A stretch of DNA of 64,000 nucleotides from Macrostomum lignano (Eukaryota): positions 372,001 to 436,000 of the forward strand of contig NIVC01000312.1 in the NCBI GenBank assembly GCA_002269645.1. The letters run 5' to 3'. Under the pieces are notes generated by a model, which made no database searches, was not told where the DNA came from, and worked only from the letters and a program-made list of their open reading frames with translations. A program made the translations under genes and the position numbers. Positions within the stretch are counted from its first letter, which is position 1. Each line of letters starts with the position of its first letter. Below are positions 1,493 through 49,459 of this stretch, in pieces.

Positions 1493-1888
1493 ATTGTGTC
1501 CCTATTCGATGAGCTCAAGCAATTAATTAACTCAGTGGCAGCCCTACAACCTGTGTTTATAAGACCTACAACTCTTGTCTCAGTGCCGCGTGATTAGGAA
1601 CGGTATTTGTCCCCGGGGCTGCAGCAGGGAGCCAGTTGTTTTTATTGGAGAGCTGCACAGATGAGAATTGAGGAGTATGTGGGAAGCTATCTATGTATCT
1701 ATCTATCTCTTATCTAAGTAAGATAATTAATTCTCATTGAGTGACGTCAAGCGCTTTATTTCAAGGATAAATGAACGAAGAAACTGAGAAGAAAACTCAT
1801 AGCTATGCAACACTTTCCGCATATATTTAATGATATTTGCTCTTATAGTTGGCTTTTTCGACTTCAAGGGTGTCAATTGCTCTTGGAC

Positions 1889-2482
1889 TTAATTCCGGTC
1901 AGAATCTCCTGCGCTCAAGCCGCGCTTCCAGAACGGAGCTCTCTTCCAGAACGGAGCTCTCTTCCAGAACGGAGCTCTCTTCCAGAACGGAGCTCTCTTC
2001 CAGAACGGAGCTCTCTTCCAGAACGGAGCTCGCTTCCAGAACGGAGCTCGCTTCCAGAATGGAGTCCGCTTCCAGAATGGGGCTCGCTTCCAGAACGGAG
2101 CCCGCTTCCAGAATGGAGCCCGCTTCCAGAATGGGGCTCGCTTCCAGAACGGAGCCCGCTTCCAGAACGGAGCCCGCTTCCAGAATGGGGCTCGCTTCCA
2201 GAATGGGGATCGCTTCGAGAATGGGGCTCGCTTCCAGAATGGGGCTCGCTTCCAGAACGGGGCTCGCTTCCAGAACGGAGCGCGCTTATTTTCGCCATGC
2301 AGTCCAGCAGTCGACCGGGCGATGATTTTCTTTGTCACATCCTCATTCAGGATACTACCGGTACTGCGCACCTCCCGTGTCAGGTGCCTGCTGGTGCTTT
2401 TCAAAGCAGAGGAGGCGTCATCCGCTGCAACAACCGCTAGAAGGACCGATGCGAACAACAATGTCAGCGACAACCTTGGCAT
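1889..2482 (-). CDS. Neuropeptide prohormone, 197 aa: signal peptide plus 20 KR-flanked tetrapeptides (17 APFW, 1 APFS, 1 SPFW, 1 TPFW), non-amidated
   Basis: Hydrophobic N-terminus MPRLSLTLLFASVLLAVVAA, a spacer ending in KR, then (xPFxKR)20. Repeat copies vary largely at synonymous positions (GCT/GCC, CCG/CCA, AGA/CGA/CGG). Acceptor ttgcAG 16 nt before the ATG; minus-strand AATAAA at 1755-1760. Confidence 0.9.
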   Translation of the reverse strand: MPRLSLTLLFASVLLAVVAADDASSALKSTSRHLTREVRSTGSILNEDVTKKIIARSTAGLHGENKRAPFWKRAPFWKRAPFWKRAPFSKRSPFWKRAPFWKRAPFWKRAPFWKRAPFWKRAPFWKRAPFWKRAPFWKRTPFWKRAPFWKRAPFWKRAPFWKRAPFWKRAPFWKRAPFWKRAPFWKRGLSAGDSDRN

Positions 2483-2591
2483 TGTAGCGCAGGTTTCACT
2501 GCAACATAGATTGAAAAAGTCGAACGTCTATTACGAGCGTAAATATCTATACGATGACATCTGAACATGAATGCATCAAAGACAGGTTTAC

Positions 2592-2692
2592 CTTTAAGGC
2601 TTTCGATACTGTCGATAATTCACAAAATATTTTGCCGCTAATCCGCCTTGTTGACTCAGAGTGGGGAGCGACTGTGAATTGCCGATTTTATA
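2592..2692 (-). promoter_or_regulatory. Putative TATA box and short 5'UTR exon of the prohormone gene
   Basis: Minus-strand TATAAAA at 2692-2686 and TGAGTCA (AP-1-like) nearby. Donor AAAG/GTAAAC at 2592/2591 pairs with the acceptor at 2500-2499, giving a 93-nt intron. Confidence 0.5.
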
Positions 2693-2819
2693 AGATGCCG
2701 ATGGATTGTCAGCCTTTGCCGATTTGCTGGAAGTCTGTGAGCTCTGGTTGGCTCGATGAATGCGGAGCTTTTGAGGGCTCGTGTCTTCGTTGTCTGCTTC
2801 CTGTCTTCTGAAATTTGTT

Positions 2820-4540
2820 TTAGTGTCTGGCTTAGTGCATAGTGACTTAGTGCACTTAGTGTCTTAGTGTCTGGCTTAGTGCATAGTGACTTAGTGCACT
2901 TAGTGTCTTAGTGTCTGGCTTAGTGCATAGTGACTTAGTGCACTTAGTGTCTTAGTGTCTGGCTTAGTGCATAGTGACTTAGTGCACTTAGTGTCTTAGT
3001 GTCTGGCTTAGTGCATAGTGACTTAGTGCACTTAGTGTCTTAGTGTCTGGCTTAGCGCACTAGTGACTTAAGTGCACTTAGTGTCTTAGTGTCTGGCTTA
3101 GTGCATAGTGACTTAGTGCACTTAGTGTCTTAGTGTCTGGCTTAGTGCACTAGTGACTTAGTGTCTGGCTTAGTGCACTAGTGACTTAAATGCACTTAGT
3201 GTCTTAGTGTCTGGCTTAGTGCACTAGTGACTTAGTGTCTGGCTTAGTGCACTAGTGACTTAGTGTCTGGCTTAGTGCACTTAGTGTCTTAGTGTCTGGC
3301 TTAGCGCACTAGTGACTTAAGTGCACTTAGTGTCTTAGTGTCTGGCTTAGCGCACTAGTGACTTAGTGCACTTAGTGTCTTAGTGTCTGGCTTAGTGCAT
3401 AGTGACTTAGTGCACTTAGTGTCTTAGTGTCTGGCTTAGTGCATAGTGACTTAGTGCACTTAGTGTCTTAGTGTCTGGCTTAGTGCATAGTGACTTAGTG
3501 CACTTAGTGTCTTAGTGTCTGGCTTAGCGCACTAGTGACTTAAGTGCACTTAGTGTCTTAGTGTCTGGCTTAGTGCATAGTGACTTAGTGCACTTAGTGT
3601 CTTAGTGTCTGGCTTAGTGCACTAGTGACTTAAGTGCACTTAGTGTCTTAGTGTCTGGCTTAGCGCACTAGTGACTTAAGTGCACTTAGTGTCTTAGTGT
3701 CTGGCTTAGCGCACTAGTGACTTAAGTGCACTTAGTGTCTTAGTGTCTGGCTTAGCGCACTAGTGACTTAAGTGCACTTAGTGTCTTAGTGTCTGGCTTA
3801 GCGCACTAGTGACTTAAGTGCACTTAGTGTCTTAGTGTCTGGCTTAGCGCACTAGTGACTTAGTGTCTGGCTTAGTGCACTAGTGACTTAAATGCACTTA
3901 GTGTCTTAGTGTCTGGCTTAGTGCACTAGTGACTTAGTGTCTGGCTTAGTGCACTAGTGACTTAAATGCACTTAGTGTCTTAGTGTCTGGCTTAGTGCAC
4001 TAGTGACTTAATGTCTGGCTTAGTGCACTAGTGACTTAGTGTCTGGCTTAGTGCACTTAGTGTCTTAGTGTCTGGCTTAGCGCACTAGTAACTTAAGTGC
4101 ACTTAGTGTCTTAGTGTCTGGCTTAGTGCACTAGTGACTTAGTGTCTGGCTTAGTGCACTAGTGACTTAGTGTCTGGCTTAGTGCACTAGTGACTTAGTG
4201 TCTGGCTTAGTGCACTTAGTGTCTTAGTGTCTGGCTTAGCGCACTAGTGACTTGGTGCACTTAGTGTCTTAGTGTCTGGCTTAGTGCATAGTGACTTGGT
4301 GCACTTAGTGTCTTAGTGTCTGGCTTAGTGCATAGTGACTTGGTGCACTTAGTGTCTTAGTGTCTGGCTTAGTGCATAGTGACTTGGTGCACTTAGTGTC
4401 TTAGTGTCTGGCTTAGTGCATAGTGACTTGGTGCACTTAGTGTCTTAGTGTCTGGCTTAGTGCATAGTGACTTGGTGCACTTAGTGTCTTAGTGTCTGGC
4501 TTAGTGCATAGTGACTTGGTGCACCTAATGTATTAGTGTC
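2820..4540. repeat. Minisatellite, about 43-44-bp unit built from TTAGTG submotifs (TTAGTGTCTGGCTTAGTGCATAGTGACTTAGTGCACTTAGTGTC)
   Basis: Visible tandem array of about 1.7 kb with variant units. Confidence 0.95.
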
Positions 4541-5136
4541 TGCGTACACTATTAAAACTAGTGCGGGATACGCCAAAGGCTTCTTCAACTGATCTAGCCC
4601 GTCCGACCAAGGCTCTTTGATGACACCAGAAGGTGATGCTCACTAGTTGAGTCCAGCATCTTTACGAAATCCCACTAAAAATCGAAATCACAGGCAACTA
4701 TAGCCATGGTGCAGCTTCATTCAGTAGACAAGCAGCGAATTAGCATCGAACGGCGAATTGAATTGTCTCTCACAGTGGGTGGAGCGACGGTTCGGCAATT
4801 TTTGTTCATTTACTCTCGTTTGGTCTGCGACTGGACTTCACCGGTTCTTTACAGGATATGTCAGCCGAGTCTGCAGCACAAGATTTCTAGGTGACACCGA
4901 CGATCCAGTTGGCATCAAAGACGTACTGGTTCCTGAGTTCATCTGCGAGGAGTTTGATTTGCCGACTAACGACTGTCGAGAAAATAAGACTGAAACACTA
5001 GAACTAAATTAGATGATAGATTGAATACTAAGAGGGGTGGAGTGCGCGACTAAAGAGAGAGGTGAGAATGGAGAGCCAATCAGAAGGCAGCAAGGGAGAG
5101 AGAGATAAGAATAACAAGATTGAGCTAGACAGAGAG

Positions 5137-5463: not shown

Positions 5464-6691
5464 CTAGATAGAGAGAGAAAACAGAGTAAACAGAGACAAG
5501 TGAAGGTGAACTAAGAAATGAATAGGAAAGTCGCGACACCGACGACCCTGATGTACAACGACTACTGGTGGAGTTCAAAGACTTCAGTAGAGTTCAAGAA
5601 AAAGCCGGGACTAACTCAGCTGCAACAGCCTGACTAACTCAGCCAGGACAGGGAGAGCTTTTGGCTTTGGTTTAGATGTGGAGGTCCTGCAGTTAAACCT
5701 GTGGTCCAGGCTTTGCGAGTGAGGCCCAGGCATCGGACTTGCTTCTCCATGAAAATTTCCTTTCCATCGAGGGTACGAGGGGCTTCATGGTCCAGAGTAG
5801 TCTAGTTTGTTGGTAGACATAACCGCTGTGGTTTTCGACTCTGAGAGTCTGAGACCAAGTCTGAGACCAGACACTCTCTGGACAGGTGCAATTTGTGAGC
5901 AAGGTGTGGTAGCCCTGGACTCTAAGCTCAATTCCTCAATTGACGCAAAAATAATTTGGCGATAAATACAACCAGGAGAAGTAGCACAACAGCTAATTGA
6001 CCCCTATAGTAACTAGTAGCTAGTAACTTCTAGTGGTCTTTGTGCGGACCTGGAGGAAATGGAATGAAGCAGCTAGTTAGTGAACACATCTACCGATGAA
6101 AATACCTCGTATTGGCTATCTCATGAAATGCCTGCATGGTTAAGGACAAAACAGACTAGCTAGAGCACATGTAGTAACTCAATACGCACAGCCTCATCAA
6201 GGTGCGGTGAATCAGCTAATAGTGAGAGCTGGCAAAAACAATTCTAGATAAGTGAGTCGAAATTTAGCATATGAAAAAGCATTTTTACAATTTTATCTGC
6301 AGGAACAGTTTTACATGCCCAGGTGAAAGAATTCACTCAGCTACAAAATTGTAGTTGATTTTTTCAACTCGGTGACTTTTACATGTATGTATTTAGGTAA
6401 AGCATTCTTTTAAGAATAAAAAATTTCTTGTTGTCATTTGTATGCACGGATAATAAATTCAAGAATGTATCATTCGACAAATTGAATGCTCTGGTATATT
6501 AATGTCTGAATTGAGATTAACTTTTTCACAGAAAGGAATGCTAGTTTTTGTTTAAATTAAAATTCCATTGTAGCAACTGAACTTCAATAAAAACGACTTT
6601 AAAAGCGTGGAACCATTTTATTATTTGAGAAACTTTAGAGCTACTTTTACCAGCCATAATTAATTTTTTTTATTAAACAGACAAACAAGCG

Positions 6692-11019: not shown

Positions 11020-11385
11020 TATAGTGCCTTGGTGTACTAGTGCCTTAGTGTACTAGTGATTTAGTGTACTAGTGCATTATTAGTGTACTAGTGACTTAGT
11101 ATACTATAGAATTAGTGTACTAGTGCCTTAGTGTACTACAGAATTAGTGTACTAGGGACTTAGTGTACTAGTGCATTATTGTACTAGTGACTTAGTATAC
11201 TATATAATTAGTGTACTAGTGCCTTAGTGTACTAGTGACTTAGTGTACTAGTGCATTATTGTACTAGTGACTTAGTGTACTAGTGCATTATTGTACTAGT
11301 GACTTAGTATACTATAGAATTAGTGTACTAGTGCCTTAGTGTACTACAGAATTAGTGTAGCGCCTTAGTGTACTAGTGCCTTAGT
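11020..11385. repeat. Degenerate TTAGTGTACTAGTG array related to the 2820-4540 array
   Basis: Shared TTAGTG, ACTAGT and GTGACTTAGT motifs. Confidence 0.85.
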
Positions 11386-12008
11386 GTTTTACTGATGAGA
11401 CGTACACGCTGACAGACCCGCTCGAACAGCAAGCTGACGTGGGAGCGCACTGGCCTACTGCTACCTTCAAGATAATCGACGATCGATTCACTATCGCGGC
11501 ACTGCATCGCCGCGCCGGCCTTGGTCTAACCAAACGACCTGTTTCACCGTCAGGAACTCCAGCTGGAAGCACGCATCATCCGCTCTGAGTACCTTAACAA
11601 CCTTACCGAGCACCCCCTAGTGCCTCAGCCGGTGCAGGAGGTGCTGATGCTGATCGTCTATTGTCTGCCCTTCTCAGAGTTCGACCCCCCGCTGATTCAA
11701 CAATTCCCGTAGGGCCAATTTTTTTTTTCGAACATTCGAAAAAAGTTGTTCAGTAGTGACTACTTACAGTAACTTGCTCGCGTGCATACAAATTTATTGA
11801 CGAAAATTCAATCAAAACGCGCGCTCTTCAAGTGTTACAGAAACTCCAGGCAAAAACGGAAAACTTGTGGAGTTGCTTTTATTTTTTTTACAAATTCGCG
11901 AAACTTTCAGCGCCGACTGGAGACACGTACGAGTTCCGTTAGTTCTTTTTGAAGAGAAAAAAAAACTATTTTTAAATGGTGTTTGAATGTTCCAAACGGG
12001 ACGGTTTT

Positions 12009-15293: not shown

Positions 15294-18200
15294 GCTCCTC
15301 TTGCTGCTGATGAAGCAGAAACTCGTCCATGAGAGCGTCCGCGGCGCCGCGTCCACCATCGAGTAGTTGCTGCTCGACGTCCTCAGCCTCGTCCTCGTCG
15401 GTGTCCACGGTGGGGCACCGGATTCGACACTCCGGATCGAGAGTCTGCCGCTCGTCTCGCCAGGCCAGGGAGTGGCCCCACACCGGCAGGCCGGGACTCT
15501 GGGCTGCCGCAGATTCAGCCGCCCAGCAGGGGCTGGCGAGGACACGGGTTCGAATCTCCGATTGAGGCGTCGAGGTTGCGTCGAGCGAACCGGCTGAGGC
15601 TGTATCGGAATGACAGAATGAGATTCTGGATGAATGAGTGTGAGTCACTCTTTAACAGCTATTCGTCTCACTTTCCGCTCGCCCATCCACCCTCTCACCT
15701 TCTCCCCATCTCACACTCTCCCCATCTCACACTCTCCCCATCTCACCCTCTCCCCATCTCACCCCTCCCCATCTCACCCCTCCCCATCACACACTCTCCC
15801 CATCTCACCCTCTCCCCATCTCTCCCTCTCCCCATCTCACCCTCTTCTATCTCACCCTCTTCTATCTCACCCTCTTCTATCTCACCCTCTCCCCATCTCA
15901 CCCTCTTCTATCTCACCCCTCCCCATCTCACCCCTCCCCATCACACACTCTCCCCATCTCACCCTCTCCCCATCTCTCCCTCTCCCCATCTCACCCTCTT
16001 CTATCTCACCCTCTTCTATCTCACCCTCTTCTATCTCACCCTCTCCCCATCTCACCCTCTTCTATCTCACCCTCTCCCCATCTCACCCCTCCCTATCTCA
16101 CTCTCTCCCCATCTCACCCCTCCCCATCTCACCCTCTCCCCATCTCACCCTCTTCTATCTCACCCTCTTCTATCTCACCCTCTCCCCATCTCACCCTCTT
16201 CTATCTCACCCTCTCCCCATCTCACCCCTCCCTATCTCACCCTCTCCCCATCTCACCCTCTCCCCATCTCACCCTCTCCCCATCTCACCCCTCCCCATCT
16301 CACCCTTTCCCCATCTCACCTTCTTTCCATCTCACTCTCTCCCCGTTTTACCCTCTCCCCATCTCACCCTCTCTCCATCTCACCTTCTTTCCATCTCACT
16401 CTCTCCCCGTTTTACCCTCTCCCCATCTCACTCTCTCCCCGTCTCACTCTCTCCCCATCTCACCCTCTCCCTATCTCACCTTCTTTCCATCTCACTCTCT
16501 CCCCGTTTTACCCTCTCCCCATCTCACTCTCTCCCCATCTCACCCTCTCCCCATCTCACTCTCTCAGCCTCTTACCCTCTTACCCTCTCACGCACCCTCT
16601 CTCACTCTGTCATAACCTCTAATCTACTCTTCAATCAATCATAGTTTCCTATAAAACTCAGCAAATACAGTTCAGTTTTATAGATAGCCCTTGAAACTAT
16701 AGATGTAGGGACACAAGCCGATTTTAAGACACCTAACAATTTATATATCCACACGAAGAATCACGGAGCTCTTAGGAGGCCCAGTCAATCATGCTGAGAG
16801 ATAATTACTAATGTTCAATTTACACCCCTATACATAGAGAGTATGAGTCAACCTTCTCACCAAGAAAGATTAAAGATTTAAAATCCTCATTCAATAAACA
16901 TCCTATACTCAAAGCTGCACATCCTTTAAATATCTGAAAATCCGAATTTCGAATAATAAGTGCCTGTGTCTATTAGCTGACTTCCTAAAATCCTTTAATC
17001 TAACAAGACTCAAGCTCAACACACACACAGTTCTGCAGCTTGAATTCAATCTGTGTCTGAAACTCTCGGAAGGTTTCTTACATACTCGTATAGATTTATA
17101 CAAGTGAATTATTTGATTTTGGGCACGTGTCTCACAGAGACAGGCGGCGTGAATCTATTTATTCATTTATGGCTACTCATGCTGGACTGCTTGGCGCCTC
17201 ATTTGACTCATCCTGCATGCTTGGCGCCTCATTTGACTCATCCTGCATGCTTGGCGCCTCATTTGACTCATCCTGCATGCTTGGCGCCTCATTTGACTCA
17301 TCCTGCATGCTTGGCGCCTCATTTGACTCATCTTGCTTGGCGCCTCATTTGACTCATCTTGCTTGGCGCCTCATTTGACTCATCCTGCATGCTTGGCGCC
17401 TCATTTGACTCATCTTGCTTGGCGCCTCATTTGACTCATCTTGCTTGGCGCCTCATTTGACTCATCCTGCATGCTTGGCGCCTCATTTGACTCATCCTGC
17501 ATGCTTGGCGCCTCATTTGACTCATCCTGCATGCTTGGCGCCTCATTTGACTCATCCTGCATGCTTGGCGCCTCATTTGACTCATCCTGCATGCTTGGCG
17601 CCTCATTTGACTCATCCTGCATGCTTGGCGCCTCATTTGACTCATCCTGCATGCTTGGCGCCTCATTTGACTCATCCTGCATGCTTGGCGCCTCATTTGA
17701 CTCATCCTGCATGCTTGGCGCCTCATTTGACTCATCCTGCTTGGCACCTCATTTGACTCATCCTGCTTGGCGCCTCATTTGACTCATCCTGCATGCTTGG
17801 CGCCTCATTTGACTCATCCTGCTTGGCACCTCATTTGACTCATCCTGCTTGGCGCCTTACTCATGACCAACCTGACCAAAGCTAGAGTGTTCAAATAAAT
17901 CTTAGCCCGTCTGTTTCGTAAAATACGCAGGCAAAATGCCTTGTAACAATGCAGGACTTACAATTTGCGTTTCTATCGTTGCACTGCAGCTGCTGAAGTC
18001 CTTCATCATCTCCAGGTACAGCAGCACTATGACAGAGCAGTATCACTTTAGCCGGCTTCCGACTATTCAAGTGCGGGTTGGCTCGAGCTTCGCTGGCCTC
18101 CAGTTCGCGCAGCACCTCCGCCAGATTCTTTATGTACTGGATGGCGTACTTCAGCGTCTCCACTTTGGACAGCTTCCGATCCTCCTTCTGTTCGATCGGC

Positions 18201-18649
18201 AGTCGGCGTCGGAGACCGTCGAACGCGGCATTTATTGAGCGCATTCGTTTGCGCTCGCGCTGATTGGCCGCTCGGCGTTGGTGGATCCGACGGGAGCGGG
18301 CGTCCGTCATCTGCCTGCGATGCGGCCGCTGCTGCTGACGGTCCTGCGGCGCGGCTGCCTTGATACACTTTGCGCTATCCTTGATCGATGCCCGACACTC
18401 GATCGGCTGATCCAGATCGATGCTTGGATAGACTGCTTGATGCTGAGCCATCGGATGCTGGGAAATGTACTCAACAAACTGATGCTGATTCTGGTCGGTA
18501 AAGTTTGAGAACTGCTCAATAGGATAGCCGCAGGATTGATGATGCTGATTGACAGGCATTTGAAACTCTGTCGGGTAGTATGGAGCTTCTGTGTGGAATA
18601 GTGATTCACCCACTGAGCTCCAGTGCTGCTGCTGATTGTGAAGTTCCAT
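15088..18649 (-). CDS. PTF1A: Pancreas transcription factor 1a-type bHLH, 399 aa; exons 18649-17962 and 15599-15088
   Basis: bHLH RRAANQRERKRMRSINAAFDGLRRRLP...RKLSKVETLKYAIQYIKNL, then KVILLCH (cf. KVIICH). Donor T/GTAAGT (phase 1) and acceptor gatacAG/CC (phase 1). Exon 2 has GLPVWGHSLAWRDERQ (C1, cf. GLPPLAGHSLSWTDEKQ) and RATLWTP (C2, cf. TAKVWTPE). Confidence 0.9.
15690..16610. repeat. CT-rich degenerate array (CCCATCTCACCCTCT) in the PTF1A intron
   Basis: Visible; explains ORFs 15576..16622 and 15634..16644. Confidence 0.9.
17188..17857. repeat. 26-30-bp minisatellite (GCATGCTTGGCGCCTCATTTGACTCATCCT)n in the PTF1A intron
   Basis: Visible homogeneous array. Confidence 0.97.
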
Positions 18650-19623: not shown

Positions 19624-20132
19624 CAAACAGTCACAAACAGTGTCACAAACAGTGTCACAAACAGTGTCACAAACAGTGTCACAAACAGTGTCACAAACAG
19701 TGTCACAAACAGTGTCACAAACAGTGTCACAAACAGTGTCACAAGCAGTGTCACAAACAGTGTCACAAGCAGTGTCACAAACAGTGTCACAAACAGTGTC
19801 ACAAGCAGTGTCACAAACAGTGTCACAAACAGTGTCACAAACAGTGTCACAAACAGTGTCACAAACAGTGTCACAAACAGTGTCACAAACAGTGTCACAA
19901 GCAGTGTCACAAACAGTGTCACAAACAGTGTCACAAGCAGTGTCACAAACAGTGTCACAAGCAGTGTCACAAACAGTGTCACAAACAGTGTCACAAACAG
20001 TGTCACAAACAGTGTCACAAACAGTGTCACAAACAGTGTCACAAACAGTGTCACAAACAGTGTCACAAGCAGTGTCACAAACAGTGTCACAAACAGTGTC
20101 ACAAACAGTGCCACAAACAGTGTCACAAGCAG
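19624..20132. repeat. (CAAACAGTGTCA)n 12-bp satellite
   Basis: Visible array. Confidence 0.97.
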
Positions 20133-20839
20133 TACACATATAGGTTGAACACAAAGTTTCGCAGAATGAGTTAAAATTTCAATCTTGAATTCCTTCTGTT
20201 AAGTATGAGCTCAGTAAATTCAAACATCATTATAAATCACTAGAATAGAAAGAGAATATCCAGGACACGCTCCATCAACCGGTTCCCTTATCCCAGTCGC
20301 CAGCCAAGTGCCACCTGCAAGAATCGATCAACCGCGTCCTGAACTCAGAAATCAAGGGTTTTGAAGTCTCTGCTGTGAACTATATGAAACCAACTTTGAT
20401 GGCATTTTGAAATTTTTGATGCAGTCTTATTTAGCTAACACAGCCAGTGCAAACAGTCTGAAATTGAGATAAGAATTGTATATACTATTGAGAGGATGAA
20501 CTGTGGAATACAGACTCTTACACATCCTTAACAGATAAAGCTATTTATTGTGGGACTTGCACGGACGGTGCGGTGCGGTGCGCGCGTGCGGTCCAATGTT
20601 TAATCATTCCCATGGGGGGGGGGGTGCCCTATCTGTTTTAATAGCTCTGCCCACGTGCGCCAATCAGTTCGGCCCCGTGTGCCAGGCTCGCGAGAGTCTC
20701 GGTGAGAATTCTGTAAAGATCTTATAGTCCTGATTCTCGTCCCGGCCGCGCCCCCCACCCCATCCCTCAAAGTTGCGCTCCAACGAAAACTAAATGAACC
20801 AAGCCTGCGTATTGACAGGAGGAGCTCAGCTTATGCTTG

Positions 20840-44581: not shown

Positions 44582-49459
<4,878 letters not shown>

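Follow-up and report, generated by a model that had tools for sequence, protein, structure and literature searches.

An APFW multi-copy peptide precursor gene of Macrostomum lignano and its probable place in a flatworm family of FW precursors

A 64-kb window of the genome of the free-living flatworm Macrostomum lignano (i.e. the whole stretch of DNA that was analysed; assembly Mlig_3_7, GCA_002269645.1, contig NIVC01000312.1, positions 372,001-436,000) contains a minus-strand open reading frame (ORF) in which the tetrapeptide Ala-Pro-Phe-Trp (APFW) recurs between Lys-Arg (KR) sites. The exact 197-aa protein is encoded on NIVC01000312.1 of GCA_002269645.1. With a probability of about 0.75, this ORF is a functional M. 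lignano gene with a single coding exon, whose product would be a multi-copy precursor of the prohormone type, belonging to a flatworm family of precursors with peptides ending in Phe-Trp (FW), and would most probably give rise to a neuronal signal. Judged by sequence comparison, the APFW gene is the Macrostomum member of this FW family and not a new family, and it is the first member that the searches brought to light in a free-living flatworm. Its unusual feature is amplification, with 20 near-identical tetrapeptides as compared to 4-6 different peptides in cestodes. The gene extends the flatworm neuropeptide catalogues by a small step and brings no new principle.

The APFW precursor and its flatworm relatives

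The complete single-exon coding sequence (1889..2482, minus strand) runs from ATG to TAA and comprises 197 codons and the stop, in exact agreement with an earlier first-pass annotation of this DNA. The precursor N-terminus (i.e. MPRLSLTLLFASVLLAVVAADD) combines one basic residue with a hydrophobic core of 17 residues, and V/A occupies positions -3/-1. Residues 1-19 or 1-20, MPRLSLTLLFASVLLAVVA(A), form a predicted signal peptide (aa 1-20; 2423..2482, minus strand) with MPR as n-region, LSLTLLFASVLLAVVAA as hydrophobic core and a predicted cleavage after A19 or A20. The best 12-mer of the core has a mean Kyte-Doolittle value of 2.93, as against 2.5-3.1 in other members of the FW family. A spacer propeptide of 45 residues follows (aa 21-65; 2288..2422, minus strand) and ends in AGLHGEN ahead of the first KR, where a homologue from a Sequence Read Archive (SRA) assembly (P0118) has EALHGE-KR. 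The repeat array (aa 66-187; 1922..2287, minus strand), delimited by Tandem Repeats Finder (TRF) and translation, consists of 20 units of 18 bp, each encoding KR and a tetrapeptide, and a closing KR. Behind this KR lies a C-terminal tail peptide, GLSAGDSDRN (aa 188-197; 1892..1921, minus strand); the corresponding tail in an environmental homologue (P0012) is KR-DGN.

Seventeen of the 20 units are APFW, and the other three are APFS (2233-2216), SPFW (2215-2198) and TPFW (2071-2054), all on the minus strand. Every unit except APFS thus ends in FW (19/20), Phe occupies position 3 in all 20, and in none does Gly precede the dibasic site. The signal peptide (by heuristic criteria), the spacer, the count of 20 KR-bounded tetrapeptides with 17 copies of APFW and the lack of a Gly donor had all been described in the first-pass annotation and were borne out, and a free-acid APFW product is indeed what KR-bounded units lacking Gly predict.

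The five 3'-most units of the array are identical in DNA, indicating recent unequal crossing-over. These units show that APFW copy number is still changing by this process with the peptide retained. No second copy of the APFW gene was detected within the 64-kb window. The gene forms a compact unit of about 1 kb between two repeats delimited by TRF, namely (TAGA)n downstream (1294-1491) and a 1.7-kb block of a 44-bp minisatellite upstream (2816..4542).

Relatives were sought with the protein, with HMMER and with profiles. When the Macrostomum protein alone served as the query, the best match among 5.8 billion proteins (E 3.6e-5) was a Dibothriocephalus latus protein (P0001) containing the series KR-SPHFW-KR-YHAFW-KR-SPAFW-KR-SAFW-KR-APFW. 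An exhaustive HMMER scan of 1.84 billion representatives returned 178 matches, nearly all of which were unrelated periodic low-complexity proteins. A motif screen, requiring a signal peptide and three or more FW-dibasic units, was passed by only three of the 178, i.e. P0012 (E 2e-16), P0001 (E 1.1e-5) and P0118. The first of these, on a 660-bp environmental contig, encodes QFW, APFW, DPFW, EAFW, APFW, EAFW, EPFW and EAFW and then KR-DGN; P0118 encodes ARFW, APQNSFW, ANFW, ...NSAFW and VNFW-stop. Profile searches added Schistocephalus solidus (two genes, including VDL91578.1), Spirometra (KAL7063363.1), a second D. latus gene (the D. latus precursors being P0001/P0156), and Echinococcus granulosus (CDS16177.1; UniProt A0A068WEX8), E. 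multilocularis (CDS40984.1), Taenia solium (TsM_000200800) and T. asiatica (A0A0R3W293) (E 2e-8), as well as three anonymous proteins, of environmental or SRA origin, whose xxD(S/A)FW peptides are longer. The Echinococcus and Taenia peptides follow the pattern ...SPFW-KR-SSFW/SDFW-KR-YGNQAFW-KRR-ANFW/ENFW-stop. All relatives of known source were flatworms, and the members from E. granulosus and T. asiatica carry the name 'Neuropeptide' in UniProt. The cestode set probably corresponds to one of the npp families of Koziol et al. 2016.

The cestode precursors share with that of Macrostomum the order of signal peptide, spacer and KR-bounded short peptides that end in FW without Gly, and the coding region of D. 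latus is likewise a single exon. Two of the Macrostomum peptides recur identically, APFW in D. latus and SPFW in Echinococcus and Taenia. In the 13 precursors compared, FW forms the C-terminus of 80 of the 91 dibasic-bounded pieces and Gly of none (0/91), and the N-terminal Ala-Pro varies between members (e.g. SPHFW, YHAFW, SAFW, SSFW, ANFW and EAFW). The peptides of cestodes are 4-7 residues long, with the last one closing the protein (FW-stop), whereas the Macrostomum array is followed by a KR and the 10-aa tail. The spacers are not alignable, being strongly acidic in cestodes but not in Macrostomum. Pfam scans of the Macrostomum precursor and of three FW relatives yielded no matching family. 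A literature text search for APFW, for FWKR-type and cestode peptide strings and for the accessions returned nothing relevant, and no Macrostomum neuropeptidome paper was found. The homologue search suggested in the first-pass annotation thus produced precursors of the same architecture in tapeworms and a few environmental contigs, two of them labelled 'Neuropeptide' by UniProt, and its proposal of a new family has to be withdrawn; by that annotation's own criterion, the refutation touches novelty alone.

As the FW family occurs both in tapeworms and in a free-living flatworm of an early-branching lineage, it can be placed in the common ancestor of rhabditophoran flatworms, with the Macrostomum APFW being a four-residue version of the family-wide motif. 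Transgenesis and RNA interference (RNAi) are routine in M. lignano, and the species thus gives experimental access to a peptide family otherwise known only from tapeworm genes with little or no annotation. With 17 identical copies, the tetrapeptide is also easy to target by mass spectrometry, antibodies and receptor deorphanisation, and any FW-peptide receptor identified by this route would be a candidate for anthelmintics against cestodes.

Several further observations were made on the relatives. The deposited D. latus model P0001 (UYRU01043596.1) is a chimera of two tandem single-exon FW genes about 5 kb apart, located at 5778-6132 and 11340-11669 and each having its own signal peptide. Most cleavage sites of the downstream copy are degenerate (ER, KQ, KH and GK for KR), such that it looks like a decaying paralogue. 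The S. solidus precursors (P0154/P0155; UniRef A0A183SLU5) were automatically named 'RxLR effector protein', an evident misannotation of a short, secreted, Arg-rich protein. Two anonymous FW-type proteins, P0157 and P0161, have in common a C-terminal extension, ...(L/V)IDENTN(E/D)GM..., which ends in RPEFNPTGW; the flatworm proteins lack this extension. Finally, proteins from SRA assemblies (P0006/P0152, 571 aa; P0034, 472 aa) contain up to 22 KR-bounded peptides ending in Phe-Tyr, again without Gly (APFY, AAFY, ALFY, ...SSFY and ...SAFY), and are possibly a Tyr-ending sister of the FW family.

Coding constraint in a minisatellite-rich window

The window contains 79 tandem arrays according to TRF, so that the ORF could be suspected of having arisen fortuitously from an 18-bp minisatellite, in a genome rich in satellites, with no protein made. 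The 18-bp array (1923-2287) is in fact free of stops in all six frames and generates overlapping ORFs of 127-211 aa on both strands, and openness alone is therefore no evidence of coding. A 211-aa plus-strand ORF (1805-2440) and the other overlapping ORFs were rejected as artefacts of the stop-free repeat unit. The KRAPFW frame, however, continues for 195 nt upstream of the array through unique sequence into the signal peptide and up to an ATG with A at -3.

Differences between the copies of the array were classified in each frame. The KRAPFW frame exhibited 26 synonymous and 3 non-synonymous differences, as compared to 1-6 synonymous and 23-27 non-synonymous differences in four of the five other frames. 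The directly antisense frame (QNGARF) showed an echo of this bias, with 20 synonymous and 8 non-synonymous differences, and 3 of its 7 distinct alleles were synonymous. A control on other in-frame arrays of the window indicated how far such counts can be trusted: the array at 19630-20133 reached P=2e-8 from a single propagated variant. As propagation of variants between copies inflates difference counts, the raw statistic of 26 against 3 (P about 1e-14) was rejected and distinct alleles were used instead. By this measure, 5 of 8 alleles in the KRAPFW frame were synonymous (binomial P=0.016). The synonymous alleles comprised Arg CGA/CGG/CGC/AGA, Ala GCT/GCC and Pro CCG/CCA, four of the five being present in several copies; each of the three non-synonymous alleles was a singleton. 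In the KRAPFW frame only, the common alleles were synonymous in 4/4 cases, with P about 0.002, or about 0.014 after correction for six frames. This allele bias points to constraint on the KRAPFW frame and is suggestive rather than overwhelming.

Chance alone does generate minisatellites with an xxFWKR repeat in the DNA of environmental eukaryotes. When 241 million metagenome records were scanned for FWKRxxFWKRxxFWKR, 27 contigs were identified; in every case the match was a short open stretch of a perfect minisatellite, and neither a signal peptide nor a spacer preceded it. The exact DNA pattern of the APFW array had no match in the JGI metagenomes, and a looser pattern produced chance minisatellites only. 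Chance arrays therefore look like these metagenome minisatellites and lack the gene-like features, and the Macrostomum locus differs from them in each such respect. When the unique 5' extension with its ATG and signal peptide, the synonymous bias peaking in the KRAPFW frame and the non-repetitive homologues of the same architecture in at least seven named flatworm species are set against the abundance of tandem arrays and open frames, a purely fortuitous ORF appears extremely improbable.

As a side observation, the stop-free unit gives rise to five ORFs besides the KRAPFW frame (127-211 aa; LPERSS, SRTELA etc.), i.e. that at 1805-2440 and others over 1849-2325, which would mislead ORF-based annotation; many other arrays in the window likewise yield spurious overlapping ORFs.

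Proposed processing and competing accounts of the peptide

The signal peptide would take the 197-aa protein into the secretory pathway, a PC2-type prohormone convertase would cut after each Lys-Arg and a carboxypeptidase E-type enzyme would trim off the basic residues. Each precursor is predicted to yield 17 copies of Ala-Pro-Phe-Trp-OH, a single SPFW, TPFW and APFS and, from the flanks of the array, two larger peptides; as no Gly precedes any KR, these products would keep a free C-terminus. Secretory vesicles would store the tetrapeptides until these are released to signal between cells through a receptor, neurons being the most probable source, and the high copy number would multiply the peptide yield per transcript. 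We infer these steps (i.e. processing, secretion, neuronal expression and receptor action) from a precursor that has the generic features of a multi-copy prohormone, namely a signal peptide and regular dibasic sites at which cleavage is predicted, in a species with a PC2 homologue. This M. lignano homologue (RNA815_2403.2) is expressed in the nervous system and its RNAi is lethal (PMC4490696). The conserved C-terminal Phe-Trp-COOH, and not Ala-Pro, is likely to be the pharmacophore or receptor-recognition element. Trimming by a dipeptidyl-peptidase (X-Pro/X-Ala) that releases a Phe-Trp dipeptide is a speculation; starts that fit such trimming are frequent (AP, SP, TP, DP, EP and EA), but many cestode unit starts (AS, SS, AN and YH) do not fit.

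A number of points count against the interpretation of the locus as an FW-family neuropeptide gene. The case for the precursor is drawn from sequence, the signal-peptide and cleavage calls being heuristic predictions, and the selection evidence per allele is modest after six-frame correction (about 0.01-0.1 depending on the statistic). A short repeated motif accounts for the likeness to the cestode proteins, so that convergence of the Macrostomum and cestode precursors is formally conceivable, and an APGWamide precursor matches the Macrostomum protein equally well in pairwise comparison. The UniProt label 'Neuropeptide' may be automatic. In triclads and trematodes no member was found: a planarian homologue is absent from the planarian prohormone supplement of Collins 2010 (i.e. 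no FWKR-type precursor), no trematode protein was among the matches of the protein, HMMER and profile searches, and two schistosome neuropeptide papers list no FW-type peptide.

A real gene with a secreted and cleaved product might also be a non-neuropeptide gene acting in a gland or other non-neuronal tissue. In this hermaphroditic flatworm the tetrapeptides might serve, for example, as prostate or seminal-fluid allohormones, as a pheromone or in defensive or antimicrobial secretions. The sequence itself does not point to a cell type, and the gene stands alone amid satellites with neighbours that give no clue. Cleavage of KR repeats by furin- or kexin-type enzymes also takes place outside neurons, and a fungal Kex2-type repeat protein (P0121) was present in the HMMER scan. 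Such a role is nevertheless unlikely, although to be reckoned with, in view of the classic multi-copy neuropeptide precursor architecture and the name 'Neuropeptide' on cestode homologues; conservation from Macrostomorpha to parasitic Cestoda likewise favours endogenous signalling over a lifestyle-specific secretion.

Alternatively, APFW could correspond in flatworms to the APGWamide/RGWamide of trochozoans, or could be a peptide of the achatin kind with a D-amino acid, two likenesses to which the first-pass annotation had drawn attention. Molluscan APGWamide and annelid RGWamide share with APFW multi-copy tetrapeptides, KR flanks, the Ala-Pro start and the Trp end, and the Tritonia APGWamide precursor (P0096; ABU82758.1) can be aligned with that of Macrostomum (HMMER scan, E 2.8e-5) through a KR-AP-x-W periodicity. 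To obtain this alignment, however, almost every unit has to be opened by a gap of one residue, and only KR, AP and W contribute to it. Pairwise scores against the Macrostomum protein were alike for Tritonia APGWamide (50 bits) and the cestode FW precursor (48 bits), and raw similarity cannot decide between them. APGWamides are defined by a C-terminal Trp-amide (PMC7270403); Gly follows APGW in their precursors (KRAPGWGKR in Tritonia) and also occupies position 3 (x-x-G-W), whereas all Macrostomum units read W-K-R or S-K-R with no Gly between Trp and the dibasic site and have Phe at position 3. The lack of a Gly donor equally sets APFW apart from the Wamide/myoinhibitory peptide superfamily with its amidated C-terminal Trp. 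Moreover, it is FW and the absence of Gly that the FW family keeps, and not AP.

With achatin, APFW has in common its tetrapeptide length, the free acid, the KR flanks and the multiple copies. The achatin motif (i.e. GFGN/GF-x-x; PMC6188537) has its Gly-Phe at the N-terminus, whereas the conserved element of APFW is C-terminal and its units A-P-F-W do not follow G-F-(G/A)-x. Achatin carries D-Phe at position 2, the usual site of isomerisation in peptides of its type; in APFW this position is Pro, and the residue varies in the homologues. We know of no D-Pro isomerisation in this peptide class. Both likenesses are accordingly superficial, the possible D-amino acid is left without support, and an APGWamide/RGWamide counterpart or an achatin-like peptide is very improbable. 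A broader proposal would make Phe-Trp-COOH an ancient signalling system of rhabditophorans that Macrostomorpha and Cestoda retain and that triclads and trematodes have lost or altered beyond recognition. It would see in this system a de-amidated, diverged counterpart of trochozoan APGWamide/RGWamide, with APFW closest to the ancestral AP-x-W tetrapeptide, and is improbable.

The nearest analogues in design outside flatworms are the acoelomorph peptides AWDF and LWDY. Their multi-copy precursors are restricted to single clades and contain paracopies at even spacing, and their processing was confirmed in acoels by liquid chromatography-tandem mass spectrometry (Thiel et al. 2018, PMC6188537). 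Like APFW, these peptides are short, have an aromatic C-terminal residue and are listed without an amide suffix, but they differ in motif and phylum, and the resemblance is one of design and not of homology.

Flanking motifs and other features of the window

Motifs suitable for expression flank the APFW coding sequence on the minus strand. A TATAAAA motif (2686..2692), about 200 nt upstream of the ATG, is a candidate core promoter. It is followed by a candidate non-coding first exon of the 5' untranslated region (5'UTR; 2592..2662), whose 5' end was guessed at about 30 nt past the TATA motif and which ends AAG|GTAAAC, and by a GT..AG interval of 93 nt (2499..2591) that is a candidate 5'UTR intron or part of an outron. 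All four upstream ATGs sit inside this interval (2591-2499) and the candidate first exon has none. The acceptor TTGCAG (2504-2499) matches the acceptor motif for spliced-leader (SL) trans-splicing in M. lignano, [T/C]TNCAG (PMC8629364), and the 93-nt 'intron' could therefore be an outron, as these motifs can be read equally well as SL trans-splicing at 2498. Downstream, an AATAAA polyadenylation motif (1755..1760) lies 128 nt past the stop and an alternative motif, ATTAAA, is located at 1831-1826. The TATA box, 5'UTR intron and polyadenylation signal of the first-pass annotation are thus all present as motifs and are known in that form only, with the intron open to the second interpretation.

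Elsewhere in the window, a minus-strand ORF of 252 aa (17891-18649) has a basic helix-loop-helix DNA-binding domain (Pfam HLH, E 7e-17), placing a transcription-factor gene about 15 kb from the APFW gene. A non-long-terminal-repeat (non-LTR) retrotransposon-like element occupies 44582-49321 on the minus strand, with an 813-aa ORF that has domains of reverse transcriptase (Pfam E 1e-30) and RNase H (Pfam E 7e-13), and with upstream ORFs. Minisatellite density is extreme, many of the 79 TRF arrays in the 64 kb measuring 0.3-1.7 kb, which fits the repeat-rich genome of M. lignano.

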